Shown in pieces: positions 34,461-56,795 of a stretch of DNA of 64,000 nt. This stretch comes from Diplonema japonicum (Eukaryota > Protista > Euglenozoa: Diplonemea): positions 186,001-250,000 of the forward strand of contig OZ025714.1 of assembly GCA_964019335.1 (NCBI GenBank), written 5' to 3'. Under the pieces are notes generated by a model that was not told the DNA's origin, ran no database searches, and saw only the letters and a program-made list of their open reading frames with translations. A program made the position numbers and the translations under genes. Position 1 is the stretch's first letter, and every line of letters begins with the position of its first letter.

Positions 34461-35294
34461 TAACTATTTATTTAGTGAATATAAGATCCTATGAATTCAC
34501 GCGTGGTGGCAGTGGTTTTGACGAGTGACGGTTATATCACGAGCGAAGTTATAACGTTTAACGAGTCAAAACTGCCACCACAAGTGAAATCATCAATCTT
34601 ATATTCACAAATACGATATTTTATTTAACGACAGCAAAATTTGAGTGGGTGGGAGGTACAGGTGGTACCAATTACAACAGGTGTCGGATATGTGCCTCGG
34701 TAGTGCACATGTTTAGCGTGGCGGATGCCATACCTCGGTGCTAAAGAATTCTGTTATTTGCTCTTGGGTAAAGATGTTCGCCTTTTTTGTTGACTCGCCT
34801 TCTTGGAACCTCTTGAGGGGGAGTGGTCTTGCAACTGCTTGTTGTAATTCCTCCTCACAACCGAGTTTAGCCTTGAATAAGCCGTCCGGACTGAACGGGC
34901 AGCAGGCCTTGCTTCATGTCGTTGAACTAGAGAATAGAATCCTCTTCTTTCGGACGGGCCCTTCTTTTCCTTCCTATAATTATGAAACACACAAAAGCGT
35001 GCCTACTCCTTTTCGTATGGCTCTTGGAAGGGGGTGAACCCTGTTGCGTCCGCCTCTTGTGCAGTCGGGCTCTTGCCTATCCCAAAGGAACCTTGGTAGG
35101 AATTCTTGGAGGGTTCTGCTTAAATTAGGCCCAGGAGTGAAATAATATTTCTTATTTTAACGCTATCAGAATTTTTTCACTCCTGGGCCTAATTTCTTTT
35201 AGAAGCCGGAGCGTGAAAATAAAGTCAAGAGTGAAATAAAGTGAATTTTTATTTTCACTCCCACCCACGAAAATTTTGATGGAGTTAAATAAAA
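34461..35294 (+). mobile_element. Non-coding A-A'-B-B' inverted-repeat element (Crypton-like?), family 1
   Basis: Hairpin 34475-34608; inverted repeat 34619-34653 with 35260-35294; perfect 21-bp internal IR at 35122-35195; flanked by A-runs. Confidence 0.7.
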
Positions 35295-35326
35295 AAAAAA
35301 AAAAAAAAATCCCACACACAAACACA

Positions 35327-37945
35327 CTATTTCTTCACGTTCCAGGATTTCTTTGGAGCAGACCGAGACACACTGGACCCGGCAGACGGGGAGCGAGGGT
35401 CGGTGGGGCTCTCAAGGTCGTTGTAAAACCCTGACGCTGTGTTCTTGCGTGCTTTTCCGAACATGCGATCAGTCATAGGGCCTGCGTTGGCACCCGCTAA
35501 GGTGTGCGTAGCGGCGCTGTTCTCCATAAAACCAAGCGGGGATCCGCTCTTGGAGGGTGGGTAAGAAGGAGGACTGTCTTCGTCATCAGACTCCTCATCA
35601 GACATCTGTATCTTCGGGAGATGTTGCTGAGACTGCCTGAGCTCCTGTCGCCTTGCCTCTCTGTGCCTGGAACGCTGTTGTTTAGCGTCCTTCAGAACGG
35701 TGATACGGTGGCCGACCTTGCGACGGGTCCCCTGTTCGAAATCTTCCTCATTGACCTCGACAGTCTGGATGATGACGGGCATGGCCTGGTTGTCCCTCCA
35801 CACGGTGAACTGTACTTGGTCACCAGGCTTGACTGTTCTCGCACATTTCTTGAAGTCCGACAGTGTTCTAACCTTCACAGCGTTGAACTGTGTGATGACG
35901 TCGTCGCTTGATATCCCAGCAAGGTCGGCAGGGCCGTTCTGAGCAACGTTGAAGACCTTCACACCTTCGATGTCCGTGTTGACAGGCTTGCCGTCCTTGA
36001 CAAGCTTCCCTACCTTCTCCTTGTGGTTCCTTATCGTGATGCCGTCGGACACCTCGATCCCCATGTATGCTGTCTTTCTTACTTTTGCTGTCTTCGCCTT
36101 GAACTCTCTGATCCTTCTCCTCCTGAGGATCTCGATGACGTTGTTGAAGTCCTCGTCGGCTTCCTGCATCATCAGGTTCCATTCCGCGTCTTCCAAATCT
36201 TCGACGTCCAAACGTGCTTCGGACTCGAGATACTCCGCATCCTCCATCCTCTCCTGGATGTAGTGGTACTTCGCCGCCATCGCCCCCGAGTTGATGACCG
36301 ACCACTCGCCTTTCTCGTTTTCCATCAAGTCCTTCCTACCCACCTCTTCCGACTTTTCGAACTGCATGATTTTCTGGATCCTTGCTTTTTCCAACCTCTC
36401 TTCCTCGGCCCTGCTCTTCTCCTCCTCCCACTTCCTCCTCAGGTCGTCGATGATGGCTTCCAGCTCGTTGACCTTGTCGCGGTGCTCCTTCATCATCTTG
36501 TCCCTTGCCTGTTGGTTCTTGGTGTCCTCTTCGGCCTTCTCCCATCCGTGAACCTCCATCAGTGCAGATAGCTGGTCCATGATGGCTTCCACTCTGTCGA
36601 CCTCGTCGGGAAGCACTGCGGGCTCGTATGGTTCTTCCTTGGGTCTGGACTGCGACCTGCCTCGTGCGGTGCGAGGCGATGCGCTCTTGATCTCCCTGCC
36701 GTACACGTCGGTGTGCACTGGAGTGGATGTCGACCTGCTGTAGTTGTCGCCGCCGAACTCCGTCTCGTCGTACTCTGTTCCGCGGTGGCTGTGCTCTCCG
36801 TCCTCGGGGTAGCGGTGCCCGTGTCCGCCGTTCTCGCTGTCAGCATGCCCAGGCGACAAGTCGTCATCGTCGTTGTCCCCTTGGTTGACAAAGATGTTGT
36901 CGATGTTGTTGTTTGCCCTCTTCAACCTGTCCGTCGCACGCTGCACGGCGTCGGCAAGCTGGTCCACCGACTCCCTCTCGTTGTCGAGCCCGCGCTGCCT
37001 CTCCTGCAGCTTCTGCTTCAGGTTAGCGTTCGCAGCCTCCTTCTGGTTGTTGACAAGCTCCAGCTTCCTCAGCTCGATGGAAAGGTCGCCTTCGATCTTG
37101 CGTGTCGCGTCTAGCTCCGACTTGAGACGTCTGACCTCCGCATCGAGGCGGGACCTCTCCATCGCCAGCTCGTCGTTCACAAGCTCGAGGGAGTTGACTT
37201 TCGCCACGAGCTGTACGTTCTCAGCACGTTCCTGCTGTGCTTGGAGGATGGCTTGGCGGGCTTTGGAGTTTGCGTTTTCGAGTGCAGCAGCTTGGCGGAG
37301 GACCTCAGCCTTCATGGTAGCCTTGTGCAGCTTGAGGTCTTGCACGGCACGGTCCGCGTGGCGTTCGGCGTTGTCGGCACGCTGGTTGGCGCGCTGCAGC
37401 TTGTCGTCGGCCTGCTTGAGGTTGGACTCGAGGGCAGCGACATCAGCATCGCGCTCGTGGAGCTGTGTGTTGCGTGCTTTGACGAGTCTTTTGAGGTCAG
37501 AAATCTCTGCGTGGAGGTCTTCTCTCTCCCTGTTGCTGGACTCGTCCTGCTCTTCCGCCTTCAGAGTCAAGACAGACACCTTGTGGTCCAGAGCGGATTT
37601 GTCCAGCTCTGCGAGCTGCAGCTCGCTTTCTTTACAAGTGAGGTCCGAAGCCTGCGAATCAACAAGCGCCTGCAGCTCGGCGATGGCGCGGCCCTGTCGT
37701 TCCTTGAACCGTGTGTTGTCGCTCTCGCCATCACGTTGCAGGTCGTAGATCATGTCGTCCTTGCCCTTCAGAAGCCTGTTCTTTTCCTTGAGCTCGTCGA
37801 GGAGCTTCCTGTAAGCGTCGCCTAACCTCTCCATCTCCACCTGATGCTCGCCTATCTCATCTGAGACAGTCGTCAACGTGTCGATTTGCGCTGTGGTCAG
37901 CCCCTCGGTGGACATGTGGTGCCGCGTCCCTAGTTCGAGGATCAT
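35327..37945 (-). CDS. Coiled-coil protein with C-terminal PDZ domain
   Basis: Long heptad-rich region; AYMGIEV...GVKVFNVAQNGPADLAGISSDDVITQFN PDZ signature; start at 37945 or 37915. Confidence 0.85.
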   Translation of the reverse strand: MILELGTRHHMSTEGLTTAQIDTLTTVSDEIGEHQVEMERLGDAYRKLLDELKEKNRLLKGKDDMIYDLQRDGESDNTRFKERQGRAIAELQALVDSQASDLTCKESELQLAELDKSALDHKVSVLTLKAEEQDESSNREREDLHAEISDLKRLVKARNTQLHERDADVAALESNLKQADDKLQRANQRADNAERHADRAVQDLKLHKATMKAEVLRQAAALENANSKARQAILQAQQERAENVQLVAKVNSLELVNDELAMERSRLDAEVRRLKSELDATRKIEGDLSIELRKLELVNNQKEAANANLKQKLQERQRGLDNERESVDQLADAVQRATDRLKRANNNIDNIFVNQGDNDDDDLSPGHADSENGGHGHRYPEDGEHSHRGTEYDETEFGGDNYSRSTSTPVHTDVYGREIKSASPRTARGRSQSRPKEEPYEPAVLPDEVDRVEAIMDQLSALMEVHGWEKAEEDTKNQQARDKMMKEHRDKVNELEAIIDDLRRKWEEEKSRAEEERLEKARIQKIMQFEKSEEVGRKDLMENEKGEWSVINSGAMAAKYHYIQERMEDAEYLESEARLDVEDLEDAEWNLMMQEADEDFNNVIEILRRRRIREFKAKTAKVRKTAYMGIEVSDGITIRNHKEKVGKLVKDGKPVNTDIEGVKVFNVAQNGPADLAGISSDDVITQFNAVKVRTLSDFKKCARTVKPGDQVQFTVWRDNQAMPVIIQTVEVNEEDFEQGTRRKVGHRITVLKDAKQQRSRHREARRQELRQSQQHLPKIQMSDEESDDEDSPPSYPPSKSGSPLGFMENSAATHTLAGANAGPMTDRMFGKARKNTASGFYNDLESPTDPRSPSAGSSVSRSAPKKSWNVKK

Positions 37946-38309
37946 TTTACCCTCTTTTTTTTTTCCCTTCTTTTTTTTTTTCCTCCCCTCCTTTTTTTTT
38001 ATATTCTTTGTGCTTAAACAAGGGAGGGGGGAATACAATACTTCTCCGCCAACTATCCCCCCCTTTGGTCCTTTTTTTCGTGTACAAGTGGCCGGATGGG
38101 GAAAGCACACTTCTTTAAATCACTCAGAGGAACGAAAAGACAGCACGGCGGATTGTGCTGCAATGTGCACCGCCGGACTAGCTTGATGTGACGAACAGAT
38201 TGAATACCAAAAGAAATATAAAGACAAAGAAGATTGTGAAAAACATTCTATGAAACAGAAGGGGGAGGGGGGGCAACTCTGGCTTCAAAAAAAAAAAGCT
38301 TTTTCAATC

Positions 38310-39111
38310 TCACTCGTTTTCATGGTATAACAAATTGACTTGAAGATATAGGGCAAGAAGGAGAGCCTTGTTGTAGGCAGAGGTTGCCTCGGATGGGTAA
38401 GAGAAGACGAACGTATCTAGTTTTTTTATTTATTTTTTCCCCCTTCCATTTCTTTCCCCTATCCATACCAGGCTCGGGAGCACAACACGCACAGCAGACG
38501 TTAGAGGTAGACACAAATTCACCCAAGGTATCGGAAGCATAGTGGAGCGGCGCCCGGCAGCACGGACGAAGGCAAAGAAAGCAAGATGAAGGGCCCTTGA
38601 GGGTATGAGTGGTAGGGCTGCTTCCACGAGTCTCAAGGTACAAAGTGTTCGGGCAACAGCAAATTATATTGCAAGCGGATTCTGTGATCGAAGCTAAGGC
38701 TCCACCTGACCCTGATGTTTCGTATAAGAATGAACTTTGTAAACAGATGTAACAAGGCCTGTGGAAGGTAAGAACTGGGATTACAGGGTACTCCGGGTAG
38801 TGCAACTGCAGTTTTTGATCGATCGTGTGTTTAACAGCAAAGGGTGGTCCGAGGTTGATCTTCAGCCCCCTCCTACTTCGCAGCGGCCACACTCTGCAGC
38901 AGCACCCCGACTCTTCATACCCAACCAGCTCCGTTCCGTCTGCTTCGTTTTCGATGCCGTACTTCCCGGCGGTCCCGAAGCCGAAAAGCTCGCAGGGGGA
39001 GCTCAGCATGCGTTCCTCCTTCTCCCTCTCCTTCATTTGTCTCACCCGCACACCGTCCTTCATGACTTGCTCCAAGGGTTGCGTCCATTGGCTACCCGTG
39101 GTGCCATACAT
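38310..39111 (-). CDS. Phospholipid scramblase family protein
   Basis: EESGCCCR, TFHRPC, LKGP motifs; removing intron 38417-38468 gives the scramblase-like tail DTFVFSYP...NKALLLALYLQVNLLYHE*. Confidence 0.75.
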
Positions 39112-39329
39112 TATGTCCGCATCTCCCTTTTTTCTTTTTTGTTATGCCTTTTTTTTTTTCCAGTGAGCACCCCCATGCACACTGAAATTTTATCGAGTTT
39201 TTATTTTTTTTACTTCCACTGAATCCAGGGGGAAAAAAAAACATAAAAAAACACCATTTTGTTTACACATGAAGATGGGGAACGGGAGAGAAGGGAGGGG
39301 GGGGGAGATCTAAAGCACAAAAAGAAAAT

Positions 39330-42146
39330 CTAAAAGCGATCTACTGGGGTTGCCTGCGACAACACCGAACCTCCCGAAGCACCAGAGTTCCCCGAGGTGG
39401 AGGGCTGCCTTCCTGGTAGCCCTGCTAGCAGGTGCACGGTATCGTGGTTTGCAATGTCTTCGTCTTCAAGCCTACAAGGGGGAAGGGTTGTAAGATTCTT
39501 TTTTGTTCTTTCTTTCCCTCACATACTGTTTCTCGTCTATGAGCAACCTCCCTCTGAATATAAGCCTTTGCGTGGCAACCGGGTGTTTCCATGCGGTCTG
39601 TATTTTCTTTCTTCTTTTTTCTTCTATCTACACACCTGAATGTGCATTTTCAAATCCTTGACTGAACAGGGCTGGGGCACCGGTAGAGCAAGCATGTTTC
39701 CAACAAGGTCTTGAATGGTGAGCTGCCACATATTACCACCAACAGCAGGCGGAGCTGAGGAAGAAGAGTCGCTTCGCATGTATGGCGTGCTGCTGTGCCT
39801 GCGAGGCACGGGGGGGGTGTCGCCCAAAAAGTGCAGGATGCACCCATCGACAACGCCGCACTCAGCCAGCGTGCTGTTGTCGTGCAGGGCCGCACCTTTG
39901 AATATCAGCCTCTGTGCGGGGACCTCGTACGCCCACACTTCTTTAATGCTCTTCTTCACCCTGTTTATGGTGCTGCTATCATCCATTGTGAAGGCTACCG
40001 CATTTCCATCCAGATCCTCAATCACGATCTGCACCTTTTTCGCCGGCGCTGCTGTTGAGACGGGACTCCCCGCCCCTAAGCTCTGCACATCGATCTCCAC
40101 CTCCGTTTCTTCGTCTTGCGGCGAAGGTACAGCAGTGGCTGGTGTCCGCTCCGATCTCACCGATTGTACAGAAGGCTGCCTGTCAGCCGACACCAGCCTC
40201 ACAGAACTTTGCGGTGTCGACGCCCTCCGTACGGGCTCCTGCTTCATGAGCTGCACGCTGTGCACAGGCACAGAGCCCTTCCTTTCCATGCGGCGTGTGT
40301 CCGACTGCACGGAGCCCTGTCGCATGTCCTGGACTGAGTGCACAGACGGCTGCCTGTTGCCCTGCACGTTGGGTTCTGATGGCATCGAACGCACTGACGG
40401 TGCCGAGTCGCAGCTAAGCACCTCACGTGCCTCGTGCAATGCTTCCGACCTAGCAGACAGCACCGAGCCTTGCCGCGACTGGGGCTTCGGGGCCTCGGGT
40501 AGGGTAGACCGCACGAATGGCACTGGAGCCATGCCCTGCGGTGTGGGCTGTGCACTGGCCACACTTCTCAGATCCATTGAAGGCATGGACTGCACGTCAC
40601 CAGGTCCTTGGGAATGATTCCTCTGGTAAAAGTGCACGGAGCCCTGCCTAGGTGCGTCTTGTGACAGGTGCTGAACAAACTGTGCGCTTGCAGAGCTTCC
40701 CGACCTCTGCTGTGCAGGCTGGGGTACGTCGTGTGGCTGGGACGGTGCATCGCTACGTGAAGATGCTAGCGAGGGCACTGACCTGCGAATGGGCTGCAGG
40801 GTGGACTCTTGAGATGCAGTTGCTGTAGGAGTGCTCTGCCAGATCGGTTGCCGTACATGACTGGAAGGGAAAACCTCCGATTGTGTAAGTATCGAATGCA
40901 CGGACTGCCTGTCGTCGCGTAGTGTGGCGTTGTGGTCAGGGGAGGGCAGCACCGGCACCACCTGAGGGCTGAACGGAACTGGTGGCATTACGGGCGTGGG
41001 AGGTGCTGTTCCCTGAGGCAAGAATAGGCCGTCATAGGCAGGTGTAGGAAGCGTGCGCCGAGGCGATGCAGGCGTAGGGGGGTCGATGCCAACAGAGACG
41101 GTGGTCTTCTCCCTCACCTTATCCTGCTCTCGCGCGTGATTCATGTCGCAGATCGACGCCTTTAGAGTATCCAGCTCCAACTGCACTCTTATCTCCCTGT
41201 TGGCCACCAGCGAAACCGTGTCCATGAGGTTGCTCACTTGCTTTTTAAGGTAGCCGACCTCTCCTTGGAGCTCGCTGGCGACACCTTCCCAGTTAGGTTG
41301 CCGTGACTGTTGTTGCTGCGGCTGCGGCTGTGGCTGCGGCTGCGATTGCAGTTGTGGTGCCAGCAACTGTCTGGATGTGTGTACTGCAGAGGGCACAGCT
41401 ACGGTAGGAGCGGAAGGAGGAGCAATAGAAGCAGGAGGAGGCACGGTGCTTACGTCTGGAGAGAGGCGGCCGTTTCGGCGCTGTGGTGACGCGGGTCCCG
41501 GCGAGAGCCTTTGCTTGGGCTGGCTCCGGGTGTTCTTAGCCTTGACGGAGAGCATCTCAGACGGGAGCGTGGCAGGTCGCCGCCATGCTGGCTCGTCGAC
41601 CTTCTTGGGCGTGCCGGAGGAGAGGCTGGAGAGGTTCACCGCGTTGACGAGGTTTGAGTCCCACTGCAGCTCCCGGTCACGTGTAGGAGGTGACGGGAGG
41701 GCAGGCGGTGGAGGAGACGAGACCCGTGGAGCAGGGAGAGACGGCGGAGGCGACGTTACTTTTGTAGGCTGTGTCCCCCAAGTGTTGGAAAGAAATGACA
41801 CGCCCGTCGCCACAGCAGCAGGTGGGACTGGCGATGCTTTGCCCTTCCCGCTCAGCTTCCTGCTGGAGACGACGATGTTGGGGTGTTGGCTGGAGAGAGG
41901 CTTGAAGTCAGAGTCAGCGCTAAGCTGCGAGATGTCGATGACCCTTGTGGGGGAGAGGCACGGCACAGGTGGCGTCGATGGTTTCGGCTGCTGCATGAGG
42001 TGCCCCGTCAAGGCAGCGTTCCGAAGCTGCGGCACCGGGGCTGGCTTCGACAGGTCGGCCCGTCGGCCCCTTATGATCTCCACCCCACCAGACCCAAGCG
42101 AGAACCCGGCATTGTACACGATGGTACCAGACCCCGCAGCAGGCAT
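39330..42146 (-). CDS. Pro/Ser/Gln-rich protein with two C-terminal ubiquitin-like domains
   Basis: QRLIFKGAALHDNSTLAECGV; a second UBL (QRLIFRGRLLIDEKQLEDEDIANHDTVHL) appears after removing introns 39598-39635 and 39472-39526. Confidence 0.8.
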
Positions 42147-42313
42147 CCCCTCCTGAAGCAAACATGGTAAGGTCATAAAGTAAGTAACGAATAAAGGGGA
42201 AAAAAAAAACACAAAAAAAGAATTCTTTTTTTCTTTTTTTTTTTTTTTTAAATTTGAAATCTTCACGAGGGTTCCAAAAAAGAAAAAGAGAAAGGATAAA
42301 AAAAAGATCATCA

Positions 42314-43432
42314 TCACATGACAGCGCACGAAGAACCGGATTTGGCAGCCCGTTCTTCCGCAGCTTGGAGGGTGGCGAGCTTCTGCTGGAGGGTGGTAAC
42401 GGAGGCACGCCATTGAGGGAGCACCGAGGTGCGGAAGGCCTCCCAGTTGTCTTTGTGCCGGACGAGGAGCTGCTGGAGGCGAAGGGTAGATGCATCGTGG
42501 ATGTGTTTGATCTGCGGTGCATGGGCGACGCTGAGGTTGGTGGAAGCGGAGGCAAGTCTCTTAGTAAGAGCCGCCTCTGCCCGTTCAAGGCTTTCCTTAT
42601 CGTGTTTTAGCTGCTGCACGGCCTTAGTTAGTTCAATGTAATCGGGGTCGTTGCTATTCTGAAGCAATGTTCCAAGCGCTTCTCGTCTGTCCTCCATCAC
42701 CCTCCCCACCGGACCTACCAAGTCCCGCAACCCCACAATAACCGATTTATTCCGTGCCTCTAGAACGGCTATCTCCGCGTAAAAATCAAGCTTTGCCTGC
42801 AACGCTTGGATCTCGCTGTGCACCCCTGCCAACGACGACAGTGATGTGACCGCCACCAGCTGATCTTCAAAAGACTCCTCATCGAATTGTTGAATTGCAG
42901 GGATCGCCGCCATTTTCTCCCTGGTGGCATTTTTTTTTTTTTTTTTTTTTTTTTTCCCCCGCAGGGGGTTGAAATATAAAAGAAGAAAAAAAAAAAGAAA
43001 ATTCTACATTTACATGGAAAACACAGGTGAATCCATCTCGGTTCCTCCTATACCGGCAGCTATCGGGGAGGGCATGAGCTTTGAAGCTGACGGGGTCATG
43101 GTATGGGTGTAGGAAATGTTGTTCAGTGCCGTTACAGCGGGGGCCGAAGACAGTGGAGCTCTGGCCGGCTGGAGAGAAACGGCAAGAGACGGCATCACGT
43201 CGGAGGCTAGGTCTACGGGGTTGCTGGGCTCTGCGTGCCAGGATGCAACCTGACAAGAGTGGGAGTGCTCGCTGCATATAATGGCCACTGCTAGAGACAC
43301 AGTGCTGACAAATTTTCCTTCTCCCCTCAATGTCACCCCAGAGCTGCTACCTGTTACATTTCCACCCAACCTGGACATCACTTCTATTACTAATTTGCCT
43401 GAATCGAGGCTGTTGCATTCTATTACATACAT
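42314..43432 (-). CDS. Coiled-coil protein with C-terminal CaaX (CAVM) prenylation motif
   Basis: Two ORFs joined in frame by intron 42921-43013; ends SSCAVM*. Confidence 0.7.
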
Positions 43433-43574
43433 TTTTTTCCCCTCTTTTTTTTTTTTTTTTTTTCCCACGCGTTTTGCTTGCTGAGAAGTATGCTACTGGA
43501 AACAAATGGCTGGAACAAATTCGAGGGGAAAAAAAAAAAGAAAATAAAGAGCAGGAGGGTTAGGTGTCGTGTGT

Positions 43575-43610
<36 letters not shown>

Positions 43611-44123
43611 TGGGACATAAAATGCAAAAAAAAAAAAAAAAAAAAAATGGTGTAAAAATCATTTTGACTTTGATGCAGCCAAAAGAATGGGTAGGTGAAG
43701 AGAGTAAAAAAAAAAAAAAAAAAGGTGTAAATCAGGAAGGGAGGTAAAAAAAAAAAAAAAGAAAAAAAATTGGGGCGTTGTGCCCTTCTTTTTTTTTGTT
43801 ATCCTTTTTTACTTGCTTTCTTATTAATTTTTTTTTCTTCATTTTCCCTCCTCCAGGGACCGGAGGGGCAAGAAAAAAAAAAGAAGAAAAAAAAAAAAAA
43901 AAACATCCTTGCCAAGCTATTATTCCCCGTGGTATATATATTTTTTTCTTTTTTCTTTTTTTTTTTTTTGCTACAATACACCGAAAAAAGAAGAAGAAGA
44001 AAAGAATATCACATAAATATCACACACCCGTACTTTTTTTTTTTTTTTTAATTTAATTACTAAGGTTTCAGGGGGGTAACTATCTTATCAATTGGAAAAA
44101 AAAAAAAAAAAAAAAAAAAAAAA

Positions 44124-44862
44124 TAGCTATTTACTGCCAACAAGTAATGACTTTACCGTTACCTCGAGGTTCCGCATTTTACCGTCGAGGGCCCGCAGGG
44201 CCCGAGATGGTAAAATGCGGAACCGAGAGGTCGGTAAAGCATTACTTGGCGGTAGGTAAGTGGTTTTATTTCACGACACTCTGAAATTACTTCACCACGA
44301 GGGGCACAACAGGGTGACAAGGGGTACAACAAGAGAGGGGTTACAAAGGTTACAATACAAGTTGTTTTTCCTCCTTTTGTTGACTAAGAGCTGCCGCTGT
44401 CGCTGGCATTGCCACTGTCACCATCTCTAATCAGGCCTTCTCATACCTGGCGCGGCCGCTGGCTCCTTTTTTTCTGCTGCTTCGGTATTTTGAAGTCTTT
44501 TGGGGAGCTTGGGTAAGCTGACTAAGTTACCCTTACCCACAGAAGAGTTACCCCCAAAAACTGGGAACAAGGCCTAGCAAAAGTGGGCAAATTGGGAGGA
44601 AAAAGTAGTCCAACTTGGAAGCCGAGGCAAAAGTTGGCCAATTGAGCTGAACCTGGGGGGAAATTAGCAAACTGAGAGGAAAAAGTAGCCCCACTGGGAA
44701 CCGAACCGAGGCAAAAATTGGCCTACCGAGGCATATTATTTAACGGAAACCCCCTATTACTTCACGGAAAACAGGCCATTATTTCACCGTGAAGTAATGA
44801 GATTTAGCGTGAAGTAATGGGCCCCCCAGTGCGTGAAGTAATTTCTGAAGAGTGAAATAAAA
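44124..44862 (+). mobile_element. Non-coding A-A'-B-B' inverted-repeat element (Crypton-like?), family 2
   Basis: Hairpin about 44128-44258 with GGGCCC-GCA-GGGCCC apex; IR 44264-44295 with 44833-44862; repeated GTGAAGTAAT near the right end; flanked by A-runs. Confidence 0.75.
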
Positions 44863-45576: not shown

Positions 45577-47580
45577 CTATCTCTTGATCGAACCATTCTG
45601 CTGTGGTGTGGCCTTCGGCCCCTCGTTCACCCTCCTCGGTACCTTAGGTATAAAACCCTCAACCGAGTTGGTAAGGACACAATAGTTGTACAGTTGTTTC
45701 TCAAGGATGTGGCGGGTCACCGGGGAGGCGAATACCGGTCTAGAGGAGTAGCCCCTTACGGAGCTGTTGTAGTAACCCAACGTGCGTAGGGAGTGGACAG
45801 AAACTACTGAAGCAGCTGGGATGAGGGGCGCTATGCCCTTACTGGTGTGGATGCGTTCTAGTGCCGTTATCACCCGGCCTATTACACGCGCGCTCACTTG
45901 GATGTCCTCACCCTCTTCACAAGGCGAGAGTCCCACCGTGGCAATGAAGTCTATGGCCAGCTCAAGCCTGGAGACCTGTCCACCATCGGATGACGTGCGG
46001 GATGAGCCGTGGGAGGTACTGTTGCCTCAAACCATTGTCGCAGTACCACCTCAGTGGCCGTGGCTTAAGCAAACTCCCCTTCTCGAAAGGCCTGTTCCAC
46101 AGGTGAACGCTGAAGTTCATCGTCTTTTTCCGTGCGAAGGTGAGTTGTAAGCTACCAGTAATCTCCGCCATCATCAGCTGCAACTCGGCAGTGTCCAGCC
46201 CGAGTCCCACTGTCGCGATGCCGTGCAGTTGCGTGCACCGGGGCCACTGGTTGTGCACAGCGCCGCCCGCGTCTCGGAAGCTGTCCTGATGTGCTCGTGC
46301 GCCTGACAGTCCCAGAGGGTGTGCTCCAGGAGTCGCAGCCCATGCATTTCGTCCGCCCCCCGACCGTGTCGTTGATGATCTTGGGGTGGAACGGGAAAAC
46401 AGCCCCAGTTATCACCTGCAGTACCCTTCGTGCTTTGGGAGGGTTGCGGGTCGCCAGGTGCAGGTGTAGCCCGTTGGTTGCCACTTCGTCGATGTCGCCC
46501 GTCCCTTGAAAGGAGGGTCTGCTCTCCTCGAGGTCCGCTCGCAGGTGGACCTTCAGGAGCTTCCTGACCTCATGCTTCAGTGCCCCAGGCTCTAGGGGGA
46601 CCCATTGCCGCGCGAATTGCGCCCAGCTGGACCCTAGTTCCTCCAGCAGCTCGTGGGTCTGTCCGAGTATCCCGCGCGGGGCGAGGGGGTTTCCTTCGGG
46701 CGGCCTCCTTGTAGCCGTCTCTGCACGCCCTGACGAGTGAACTGGACTCATCGTCGCTCCTCATCATCCGCGCAAACGTTGTGATCCTGCGGTATGCGGC
46801 TGCTGAGTACGGGTCCAGCCTGTGTCCTTTGAAAGCCACCCCGAGAAGGGCGCCTGACGAGCGTGTTGGGTTGTGTGGGCCCCATATGCAAGAGGTAATC
46901 TTCTTCCTGAGGGAGTCCAAGAGCGAGTCCGTGGGTGGCGTGTAGAGCACTCCGTAGAGCGCCGCTGGTAGGATGCAGTCTTCTATCAGTTGGGCCTTAC
47001 GCGTTCTCGTGATTTGGGTCACTGTGAGCCTGTCGACAGCATCTAGCGCCGTGGCGATCCTTGTGTTCTTCGTCCTGGTGGGCTGCAGGCACACCGTACA
47101 CCCCAGCATAGTTACGCTTTTCACCGTATCGAATAAGGTGCCCCTCATCGCCAGCTTGCTTCTGTACCCCTTCTTGGTGCTAAAGGGCTTTGTTTTCCCC
47201 GGGTGTACCGACATGTTTGTCAGGCGGCAGAGCTCGTCCAGCAAGAGTATGGAACTCTGGACCGCCTTCTCCGAGATCCTAGAGAAGAGGTATAGGCCGT
47301 CCGCGTAGGAGATGGGTAGGACTTCTGGGGATGTGGTGACGCATCGCCTGGTGTAGGCAGCGAGGATGGCGTTGATGAAGACGGGTGAGATAGGGCACAT
47401 GCCCAGTCTCTCCGCAAGGTCGAACGTTAACGTGACAGGGACGGAGTCGAAACACTTCCTGAAGTCTACCGACAGGCCATACAAGGGTTCTGCCCCCTGT
47501 CGAGCATTTTCCACCTGCGCACACACTTTGAAGAGTAGGTCATCGACGCCGTGTTTTGGCCTAAAGCCGTGCTGCGTCGG
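45577..47580 (-). mobile_element. Degenerate, 5'-truncated non-LTR retrotransposon with reverse transcriptase
   Basis: QHGFRP, LSVDFRKCFDSVP, SYADG (mutated YADD) and TMLGC motifs; the QG motif region is deleted; CMGC..HTLWDC knuckle; frameshifts. Confidence 0.88.
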
Positions 47581-55887: not shown

Positions 55888-55922
<35 letters not shown>

Positions 55923-55927
<5 letters not shown>

Positions 55928-56795
55928 ATTTTGTAAAGTTACATGAGGAAATTCCTAAAGGACCATAAAAAATCAGAAATCACTTTACCGTTCACAAGTA
56001 AGTAAAAATAAAGTGAACAGTCAAGCATCCGAGGCAAAAGAGGCATAAACACACTTTACCACGTTTCCGGGCCACCAAGCATCACACCTGAGGCTGGCAA
56101 ATGCCGAAAATTACACTGGCCATGCATACAGGCGTTCTTTTGCACAATACCTTGTTGATGAAGGAACCTGCTATTTTGGCTGGAAGTCAGACCTGATCAA
56201 GCCCCCGCGCAAAACCAGCAGTTTCTGAAGAGCGATGATCAAGTGCCGACACAAATTACACAAAACCTACAGAATTCTGTCAATTTGACATCGTCTTCTC
56301 AGGCACTCAGGCTTAGTTTTGACATCAGTGTGAACATTTCGCAGAAGTGAACATAAAGGGTTCACAGTGTCCGAAAAACTTCCTCATTTAACTTTACAAA
56401 AATTAAATAAAATATCATATTAAATAAAAATCATGGCTGGATGGGTTGCATCCGCACTTAAATACAAGGCAAAGCGGGAACGCAACCGGCAGGTATTATC
56501 CATGCCCAGGTCAAGCACCCGCCCATCGAATGGAGCCTAACGGCATCGCCCAATCATTGGGCTAATTATGATACTCGGTATCTGGGTTACGGAGCTGTTT
56601 CTTCCTTTTTGCTATAAATCATCGATTCCCATGGTTTTGCCTAACGGGCCGCACAACTCTCATACGACCTATGCCTATGGGTTCGTAGAGTTGTGGGGCG
56701 TGTGAAGAAGAAATAAGAAAGAAGGAGGCATAGTTAGTTTATTACTTTCGTGCAATTGAACAGTGTTCCGGCCACGGTTTTTTTTTTTTTTTTAA
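55923..56795 (-). mobile_element. Inverted-repeat element, probably a third A-A'-B-B' family in reverse orientation
   Basis: About 31-bp IR at 55923-55953 / 56378-56408; adjacent junction ATATGATATTTTATTTAA (minus strand) is nearly identical to 34611-34628; weak second IR at 56421-56441 / 56767-56795. Confidence 0.55.

Follow-up and report, generated by a model that had tools for sequence, protein, structure and literature searches.

Two short elements of Diplonema japonicum as probable non-autonomous members of a tyrosine-recombinase transposon group inserting into T-runs

Introduction

Two short elements, located at positions 34461-35294 (family 1) and 44124-44862 (family 2) of a 64,000-nucleotide stretch of the genome of the marine diplonemid Diplonema japonicum (C67:186001-250000, called the window here), end in the same way and have nothing in common internally except scattered GTKAARTAA 9-mers. 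How is it that elements so different inside share their ends, and what moves them? An initial annotation of the window took both for non-coding, non-autonomous elements whose family is mobilised by a recombinase and has poly(A) tracts as its insertion target. The analysis presented here supports the mobilisation and the target that were proposed: with a probability of about three in four, both elements are non-autonomous members of a group of ~800 copies that is moved in trans by small Xer/Cre-like recombinases, which are encoded by relatives of 1.1-1.7 kb with the same ends. The support comes from recombinase genes present in two of these same-ended relatives (the L057 and C7 elements, see below) and from recombinase traces in family 1. 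The initial annotation had listed three outcomes as contrary to its proposal, namely a single-copy status, copy boundaries that differ from the termini, and autonomous copies with a DDE transposase and ordinary target duplications; all three failed to appear.

The assembly comprises 62.5 Mb in 132 contigs. The window contains long, intron-poor open reading frames (ORFs), nearly all of them on the minus strand, which is also the sense strand of both elements. Motif counts were set against those of reversed-pattern controls, and hairpin z-scores were calculated against dinucleotide shuffles. For the elements on C7, C10 and C36 the evidence consists of coordinates only.

Two Families with Common Termini

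The strings quoted in the initial annotation are all present where it had placed them, and the common plan that it described, a long hairpin abutting a second pair of inverted repeats, is found as arms and hairpins in both elements. The features of family 1 are the following (lengths in nucleotides, nt, or base pairs, bp):

34461..35294, minus strand: whole element, ~832 bp; at least 27 near-full copies in the genome, with identical boundaries; mean divergence from the column majority 2.4%
34461..34470, minus strand: 3' terminus, whose sense strand reads TAAATAGTTA and then the target T-run; conserved in 20 of 23 copies
34470..34612, unstranded: long subterminal hairpin (A-A' of the initial annotation); folding energy -35.8 kcal/mol (plus strand) and -35.5 (minus strand), with z of -9.0 and -9.6, respectively
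34606..34626, unstranded: AAATA-cgatattt-TATTT, the internal spacer site that separates hairpin and 3' arm
34619..34655, minus strand: subterminal arm B (sense 3' arm), 37 nt, 86% complementary to 35258-35294
34731..34921, minus strand: trace of a tyrosine-recombinase N-terminal (SAM-like) domain, ~residues 23-90, in two collinear pieces
35122..35195, unstranded: a further, short hairpin close to the 5' end of the sense strand; 25 nt pair with 96% complementarity; carries GTGAAATAA motifs
35258..35294, minus strand: terminal arm B' (sense 5' arm), beginning with TTATTTAAC

The corresponding features of family 2 are:

44124..44862, minus strand: whole element, ~737 bp; ~280 copies; mean divergence from the column majority 0.7%
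44124..44133, minus strand: 3' terminus, whose sense strand reads TAAATAGCTA; T is the next base in 30 of 30 copies
44132..44254, unstranded: long subterminal hairpin, tipped by GGGCCC-GCA-GGGCCC, whose plus strand has tandem G.A mismatches; folding energy -51.1 kcal/mol (plus strand) and -45.9 (minus strand), with z of -13.1 and -11.9, respectively
44264..44295, minus strand: subterminal arm B, preceded by the spacer AGGTA-agtggttt
44736-44817: five more motifs of the GTGAAGTAA/GTTAAATAA type, in both orientations, upstream of B'
44833..44862, minus strand: terminal arm B' (sense 5' end), beginning with TTATTTCAC

Neither element is a single-copy sequence. For family 2, at least 40 full copies with 97-99% identity were scored from 646 first-look candidates. 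In 53 aligned copies of the two families, similarity ends exactly at the termini drawn in the initial annotation. The motif TTTTATTTMACGAC is present 308 times in the genome (3 in the control), TTTTATTTMACTC 727 times (21 in the control), and TAAATAGYTAT 857 times (33 in the control). These counts imply that the genome contains ~800 elements of this kind with the same 3' end. The GTKAARTAA 9-mers are also concentrated in the elements, since 13 of their 16 matches in the window lie inside the two of them, while only ~2 would be expected in the whole window. Family 2 sequences were also found in assembled contigs from sequencing runs labelled as four organisms.

The sense-strand plan is the same in all families: a 5'-TTATTTMAC arm, followed at a distance by the matching arm, an 8-nt spacer, an imperfect hairpin of 110-135 nt, and TAAATAGYTA-3'. 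The arms are family-specific, asymmetric inverted repeats of 30-48 nt. Arms and long hairpin are present in four families, namely families 1 and 2, a third non-autonomous family (L020:2343-2890), and a recombinase-coding element (L057:2547-3613). As single-stranded DNA, the hairpins of families 1 and 2 reach z-scores of -9 to -13.

Target Choice

The elements are usually flanked on both sides by T-runs (A-runs on the plus strand). The base that follows the 3' end is T in 19 of 23 family 1 copies, and in the 30 family 2 copies T occupies position -1 in 30, position -2 in 29, and position +1 in 30. Copies with non-T flanks (L033, L044, L045, L052, and L057) show no target duplication, and duplications of the type produced by DDE transposases were not seen in the elements. 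The comparison of an empty and a filled site leads to the same picture: the flanks of copy L011 are contiguous in the paralogous sequence L062, where six T are found, while the filled site reads four T, the element, and two T. With respect to flanking long open frames there is no clear orientation bias (36 elements on the same strand and 25 on the opposite one).

The right ends given in the initial annotation are correct in position, but the outer two A of its terminal AAAA (35293-35294 and 44861-44862 on the plus strand) are probably target sequence. The element would start with TTATTT, the outer TT belonging to the target, because subfamily variants alter only the inner two of the four T and because 36 of 45 end-to-end junctions (see below) read TAAATAGYTA|TTATTTCAC.

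The A-runs that follow the plus-strand right end, together with AATAAA-like ends, would also be expected of RNA-mediated elements, either DIRS/VIPER-like retroelements or poly(A) retroposons similar to short interspersed nuclear elements and copied by a long interspersed nuclear element (LINE). In addition, a reverse-transcriptase ORF (46570-47526) lies 1.7 kb away, and the internal region complementary to the ends resembles DIRS elements. However, A-runs are present on both flanks, copies located outside such runs have neither a tail nor a target duplication, and the empty site corresponds to a simple insertion. Moreover, the recombinase-bearing relatives are too small (1.1-1.7 kb) to accommodate a reverse transcriptase, and the reverse-transcriptase ORF is absent from the flanks of other copies. 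An RNA-mediated origin is therefore scarcely credible.

The ORF at window:46570-47526 (minus strand, 318 residues) gives a weak RVT_1 match (29.8 bits) and is probably a LINE fragment. It is unlinked to family 2, because other copies of this family have unrelated flanks.

The Mobilising Enzyme

A search of the genome with PF00589 gave 31 tyrosine-recombinase matches. The initial annotation had envisaged long copies with a tyrosine recombinase, and two elements, on L057 and C7, carry such a gene between the same termini. The first one, L057:2547-3613 (1.07 kb), starts with TTATTTCACAG after a T-run and possesses a pair of 48-nt arms with 81% complementarity; its 3' part consists of spacer, hairpin, and AATAAATAGTTA, followed by a T-run. 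The recombinase gene is located between the arms, on the sense strand, and contains one in-frame TAG and an N-terminal deletion. The EukProt transcriptome of Diplonema japonicum contains, as an ORF, an intact relative of this gene, coding for a recombinase of 285 residues (P0002). On PF00589 this protein reaches 69 bits, and its closest solved structure is archaeal XerA; in the alignment with XerA the R, K, H-x-x-R, W, and Tyr nucleophile positions are kept. It is 96-98% identical to its closest copies in the D. japonicum genome, in which P0002-like genes occupy ~15 loci with 72-98% identity. In C10, a terminus is found 316 bp past one of these genes.

A second recombinase family is represented by open frames of 429-440 residues at four loci. 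The C7 gene (842551-843348, minus strand), with an open frame of 429 residues, is flanked by inverted TTTTATTTCACTC 13-mers at 843811 (minus strand) and 842268 (plus strand). A TAAATAGYTA terminus was forecast ~120-170 bp below the lower arm, on the minus strand, and is present at 842137-842147 (minus strand); the element is therefore ~1.68 kb long (C7:842138-843821). Together with it, C73:317821-318618, C60:185386-186180, and C36:2558-3355 are candidates for intact elements. Other widely spaced motif pairs, also known as coordinates only, are C5:740569/746341, C5:319419/321478, and C7:840817-843811. A length-limited protein search gave a single match.

With respect to the proposed non-coding nature of both elements, the two families differ. 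In the window copy of family 2, tblastn against recombinases detected no coding trace. Family 1, however, is not non-coding in origin. In about 20 of its copies, the sense strand matches P0002, P0003 or P0013 in their N-terminal domain (E 4e-9 to 4e-3), genome-wide recombinase matches land within the family 1 copies L014 and L022, and in the window copy local tblastn gave matches to P0002 (E 3e-4) and P0010 (E 0.03) at 34731-34921. Judged from these sequence matches, family 1 derives from a tyrosine-recombinase element and has been shortened and has decayed. The statement that the window encodes no mobilising enzyme is correct for intact genes, but a decayed recombinase trace is present in a third element, at 55921-56430.

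The layout of the elements fits the published definition of Helitron2 (PMC3627910, PMC5148889), and non-autonomous rolling-circle elements of the Helitron2/Helentron type (like HINEs or DINE-1), moved by a Rep-helicase, were in fact the first hypothesis, suggested by insertion at T|T, by the asymmetry of the inverted repeat, and by the hairpin at the 3' end. However, PF14214 has no match in the genome, and PIF1 (PF05970) is limited to one gene of 488 residues, with no Rep domain upstream of it, and one fragment. In contrast, the protein encoded between these very termini is a tyrosine recombinase, of which family 1 holds traces. These results largely refute a rolling-circle origin, which is very improbable.

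The gene of 488 residues (L064:3710-5176, C22) is the sole clear Pif1-type helicase gene of the genome. Kinetoplastids possess several Pif1-type helicases, more than the one clear gene found here.

In the P0013/P0154 protein cluster, a recombinase relative of 338 residues (P0154) is present on 37 contigs (up to 2.7 Mb) of an assembly deposited in the ENA. This distribution suggests a related multi-copy element in another eukaryote.

End-to-End Junctions and Folding

Head-to-tail junctions, in which the 3' end of one element is joined to the 5' end of another, were found 45 times in the genome and never in the control; 36 of the 45 have no spacer. In C36:574828-588046, nine head-to-tail junctions TAAATAGTTA|TTATTTCAC follow each other with a period of exactly 1650 bp, forming a tandem array of one element. 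Genome profile and protein searches reported no recombinase match in this array. Junctions of this kind are compatible with a circle, without being proof of it.

The folding of joined ends was computed for the four families (family 1, family 2, L020:2343-2890, and the coding element L057) with the last 230 nt of each element joined to its first 70 nt. In all four, the joined-end strand forms one continuous stem of ~250 nt (energies between -65 and -86 kcal/mol, z-scores between -11 and -14), in which the 5' and 3' arms are paired with each other and 6-7 nt stay unpaired as a bubble at the junction (ATAGCTA in family 2). In family 1, the spacer site at 34606..34626 opposes the end-to-end junction in this fold. 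The paired sequences are unrelated among the four families, except for the terminal motifs and the hairpin tip of families 2 and 3, while the pairing is kept. In the initial annotation, the spacer region was seen as repeating the circle junction internally. Half of this likeness restates the B/B' inverted repeat, and the other half, in which the left terminus pairs with the spacer, is less strong (in family 1, 74% over 31 nt); nevertheless, the joined-end strand folds continuously across the junction in the four families.

The two strands are not equivalent. Mismatches within the arms are asymmetric, with 34 C.T against 10 G.A on the sense strand, so that G.A, often in tandem, prevails on the plus strand, and the family 2 hairpin folds ~5 kcal/mol more stably as plus than as minus strand. 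This asymmetry favours, without proving, the strand antisense to the recombinase gene, i.e. the plus strand of the window, as the one that would fold.

The same recombinases and the same family could also act by ordinary duplex recombination. The joined ends would then be a duplex core, with inverted arms (R)TAAATA and TATTTMAC around a short spacer, and the long hairpin and family-specific arms would be accessory or multimeric duplex sites for protein, cruciforms, or by-products of copying instead of a folded single strand. The usual substrate of this class of recombinases is a duplex site whose inverted arms enclose 6-8 bp (PMC3212892), inverted arms are indeed present at the junction, the GTKAARTAA repeats occur in both orientations like protein-binding repeats, and changes within families show no sign of selection for pairing. 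However, a duplex site leaves without explanation the continuous self-pairing module of ~250 nt that is maintained in four families despite their differing paired sequences, as well as the strand-asymmetric mismatches. In addition, the spacer between the putative arms at the head-to-tail junction has only 5 bp, no overlap of 6-8 bp is duplicated at insertions, and the high copy number argues for a replicative route. Recombination through a purely duplex site is thus rather improbable.

Proposed Cycle and Its Weak Points

According to the cycle that is proposed here, the recombinase would join the two ends of the element, 3' to 5', into the junction TAAATAGYTA|TTATTTMAC. Junction and 5' arm would then fold onto the 3' arm, spacer, and hairpin on one of the strands, in all likelihood the plus strand, and the resulting stem of ~250 nt, with its unpaired junction bubble of 6-7 nt, would be the recombination site. 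Integration would take place within a T-run, with at least two T on one side and at least one on the other, and the exchange would cause no target duplication that can be measured. The process would probably be replicative; the ~280 copies of family 2 at 0.7% divergence fit copy-and-paste. The analysis shows the membership of the families, their termini, the choice of target, the relatives that code for a recombinase, and the end-to-end junctions present in the genome, whereas the free circle and the copy-out mode are steps that we infer. As to single-strand folding, its participation in the movement of the elements is put forward tentatively, its chances being slightly less than even.

Several observations weigh against this interpretation, and they concern the enzyme, the target, and the fold. 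All the ~15 P0002-like loci are broken by at least one stop or are partial matches, and for family 2 there is no proven intact partner, its candidate frames of 429-440 residues being known by coordinates only. The empty site is a paralogue with 87-90% identity, and homopolymer runs mask the exact crossover point. Head-to-tail junctions could alternatively result from insertion beside a resident copy. Neither a circle nor an excision product appeared in the sequencing runs, all of which consist of assembled contigs. With regard to folding, the C.T/G.A asymmetry counts tandem mismatches, which are not independent, and the changes found within families are neutral (19 G.T and 30 A.C, compensatory pairs numbering only two). 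Covariation within families is, however, uninformative, because copies decay neutrally after insertion, and the support for the structure is the comparison of four families.

Other Members and Partial Copies

The window harbours a third, decayed member of the group:

55921..56430, plus strand: T-run, then TAAATTTAAT; inverted repeats of ~33 nt at 55921-55953 and 56377-56410

This element is antisense to the gene cluster. At 56013-56198 it retains a trace of a recombinase, from the H-x-x-R region, that is matched by 87 recombinase queries (best E 1e-7). Neither a clear 3' hairpin nor a TAAATAG terminus was found downstream.

The third non-autonomous family, L020:2343-2890 (C11), is ~550 bp long, follows the same plan, and has the GGGCCC-GCA-GGGCCC tip that is also present in family 2. 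This copy adjoins a copy of family 1 at the latter's 5' end. In the genome, the terminal motif of this third family is often found in pairs 400-420 bp apart.

Some copies are incomplete. L057:2300-2466 (C12) is a lone 3' module (arm, spacer, hairpin, and TAAATAGCTA) of a family 2-like element without a 5' part, and L065:852-1200 is, similarly, a 5'-truncated family 1 copy. Copies in which only the 3' end is present may be informative on the mechanism. Partial matches to family 1 were considered as possible long copies and rejected, L065 being a 5'-truncated copy beside host-like ORFs without Pfam match and L066 a short variant. L062 (C91:376000-385999) belongs to a repeat unit of ~6.7 kb that is present three times on C91 and carries a ubiquitin-plus-LRR gene (402 residues). 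The unit includes a family 1 piece without the hairpin end, and it is the source of the empty site for copy L011.

Significance

To our knowledge, tyrosine-recombinase DNA transposons are the least understood class of eukaryotic transposons, and their ends have been described as featureless. A recently active group of ~800 copies with elaborate ends points to a defined recombination site. If the folded-strand interpretation were true, integron-like recombination would extend to eukaryotes, and the amplification of elements by a conservative recombinase would be explained. In practical terms, ends that are nearly indistinguishable from those of Helitron2 could lead structure-based annotation to mislabel such elements. 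The smallest coding members, 1.1-1.7 kb with one protein of 285-440 residues, would be compact and testable systems for site-specific integration. Finally, T-runs may form a substantial part of the intergenic sequence in this polycistronic genome, so that insertions may affect trans-splicing signals.

Comparison with Known Systems

Cryptons (Goodwin 2003; Kojima and Jurka 2011, PMC3212892) resemble the elements described here in being eukaryotic DNA elements whose sole protein is a tyrosine recombinase, and they share with them a proposed circular intermediate, the absence of classical target duplications, and abundant non-autonomous derivatives. According to their description, Cryptons have neither terminal inverted repeats nor hairpins, and their terminal direct repeats are of 4-6 bp or missing (PMC3212892). 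In contrast, the elements of D. japonicum are much smaller (1.1-1.7 kb), insert into T-runs, and possess an asymmetric inverted repeat of 30-48 nt and a hairpin of 110-135 nt. Their recombinase matches PF00589 and no other Pfam domain; therefore, it has none of the domains tied to Crypton groups. Of the features of the group taken in the broad sense (Crypton sensu lato), the elements show coding members with a tyrosine recombinase that keeps the catalytic residues and with no reverse transcriptase, and cis-acting ends common to the window elements and the recombinase-coding members. They do not show the lack of terminal inverted repeats.

Helitron2 elements are defined by a terminal inverted repeat that is asymmetric and whose 3' arm lies just upstream of the 3' hairpin, by a 5' T, and by insertion after TTTT or within TT without duplication (PMC3627910, PMC5148889). 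Helitron2/Helentron elements and HINEs (PMC3627910, PMC5148889, PMC4067079) have nearly the same ends as the elements studied here, which display all the end features of the definition, the T-run target, and head-to-tail junctions. However, a tyrosine recombinase replaces the Rep-helicase, no Rep (HUH)-Pif1 protein being associated with these ends, and the hairpin exceeds the published tail of 20-30 nt by a factor of 4-5.

The initial annotation had also drawn a comparison with DIRS-like retrotransposons, which likewise possess a tyrosine recombinase and, internally, a region that is complementary to their ends. This comparison fails on the reverse transcriptase: the coding relatives hold the recombinase only, with neither reverse transcriptase nor RNase H, and their size excludes both. 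Literature searches retrieved no report of Crypton or other tyrosine-recombinase transposons in diplonemids, nor of folded-strand recombination in eukaryotic transposons. The ends of the elements, which combine an off-centre inverted repeat with a long hairpin, insertion into T-runs, and no duplication, look unlike those of the eukaryotic tyrosine-recombinase transposons that we found described.

Folded-strand substrates of tyrosine recombinases are known from integron attC sites (PMC2727003, PMC3458562). AttC sites are imperfect palindromes in which the fold is kept while the sequence varies, the point of exchange is unpaired, one strand is favoured, and insertion occurs without duplication and is resolved by replication, features that the joined ends modelled here would share. 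In contrast, attC sites are bacterial, measure 60-140 nt, and depend on a separate platform and integrase, whereas the fold considered here, a computed one, would be made of the element's own joined ends and extend over ~250 nt. For copy-out by this class of enzymes, the strand-biased circularizing integrative elements of Vibrio provide a precedent (PMC9345347). They are bacterial elements of ~7 kb with four genes, including two for recombinases, and their abstract mentions no comparable hairpin module (PMC9345347). The nearest precedents for the mechanism are bacterial, namely integron attC sites and the Vibrio strand-biased circularizing elements. It is possible, though rather doubtful, that the elements of D. 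japonicum offer the first case, among eukaryotic transposons, of a tyrosine recombinase working on a folded single strand: a circularised strand copy would carry an attC-like site made of its joined ends folded with the internal arm, spacer, and hairpin, a single strand exchange into T-runs would be resolved by replication, and this copy-and-paste route would have converged on the end architecture of Helitron2 rolling-circle elements.

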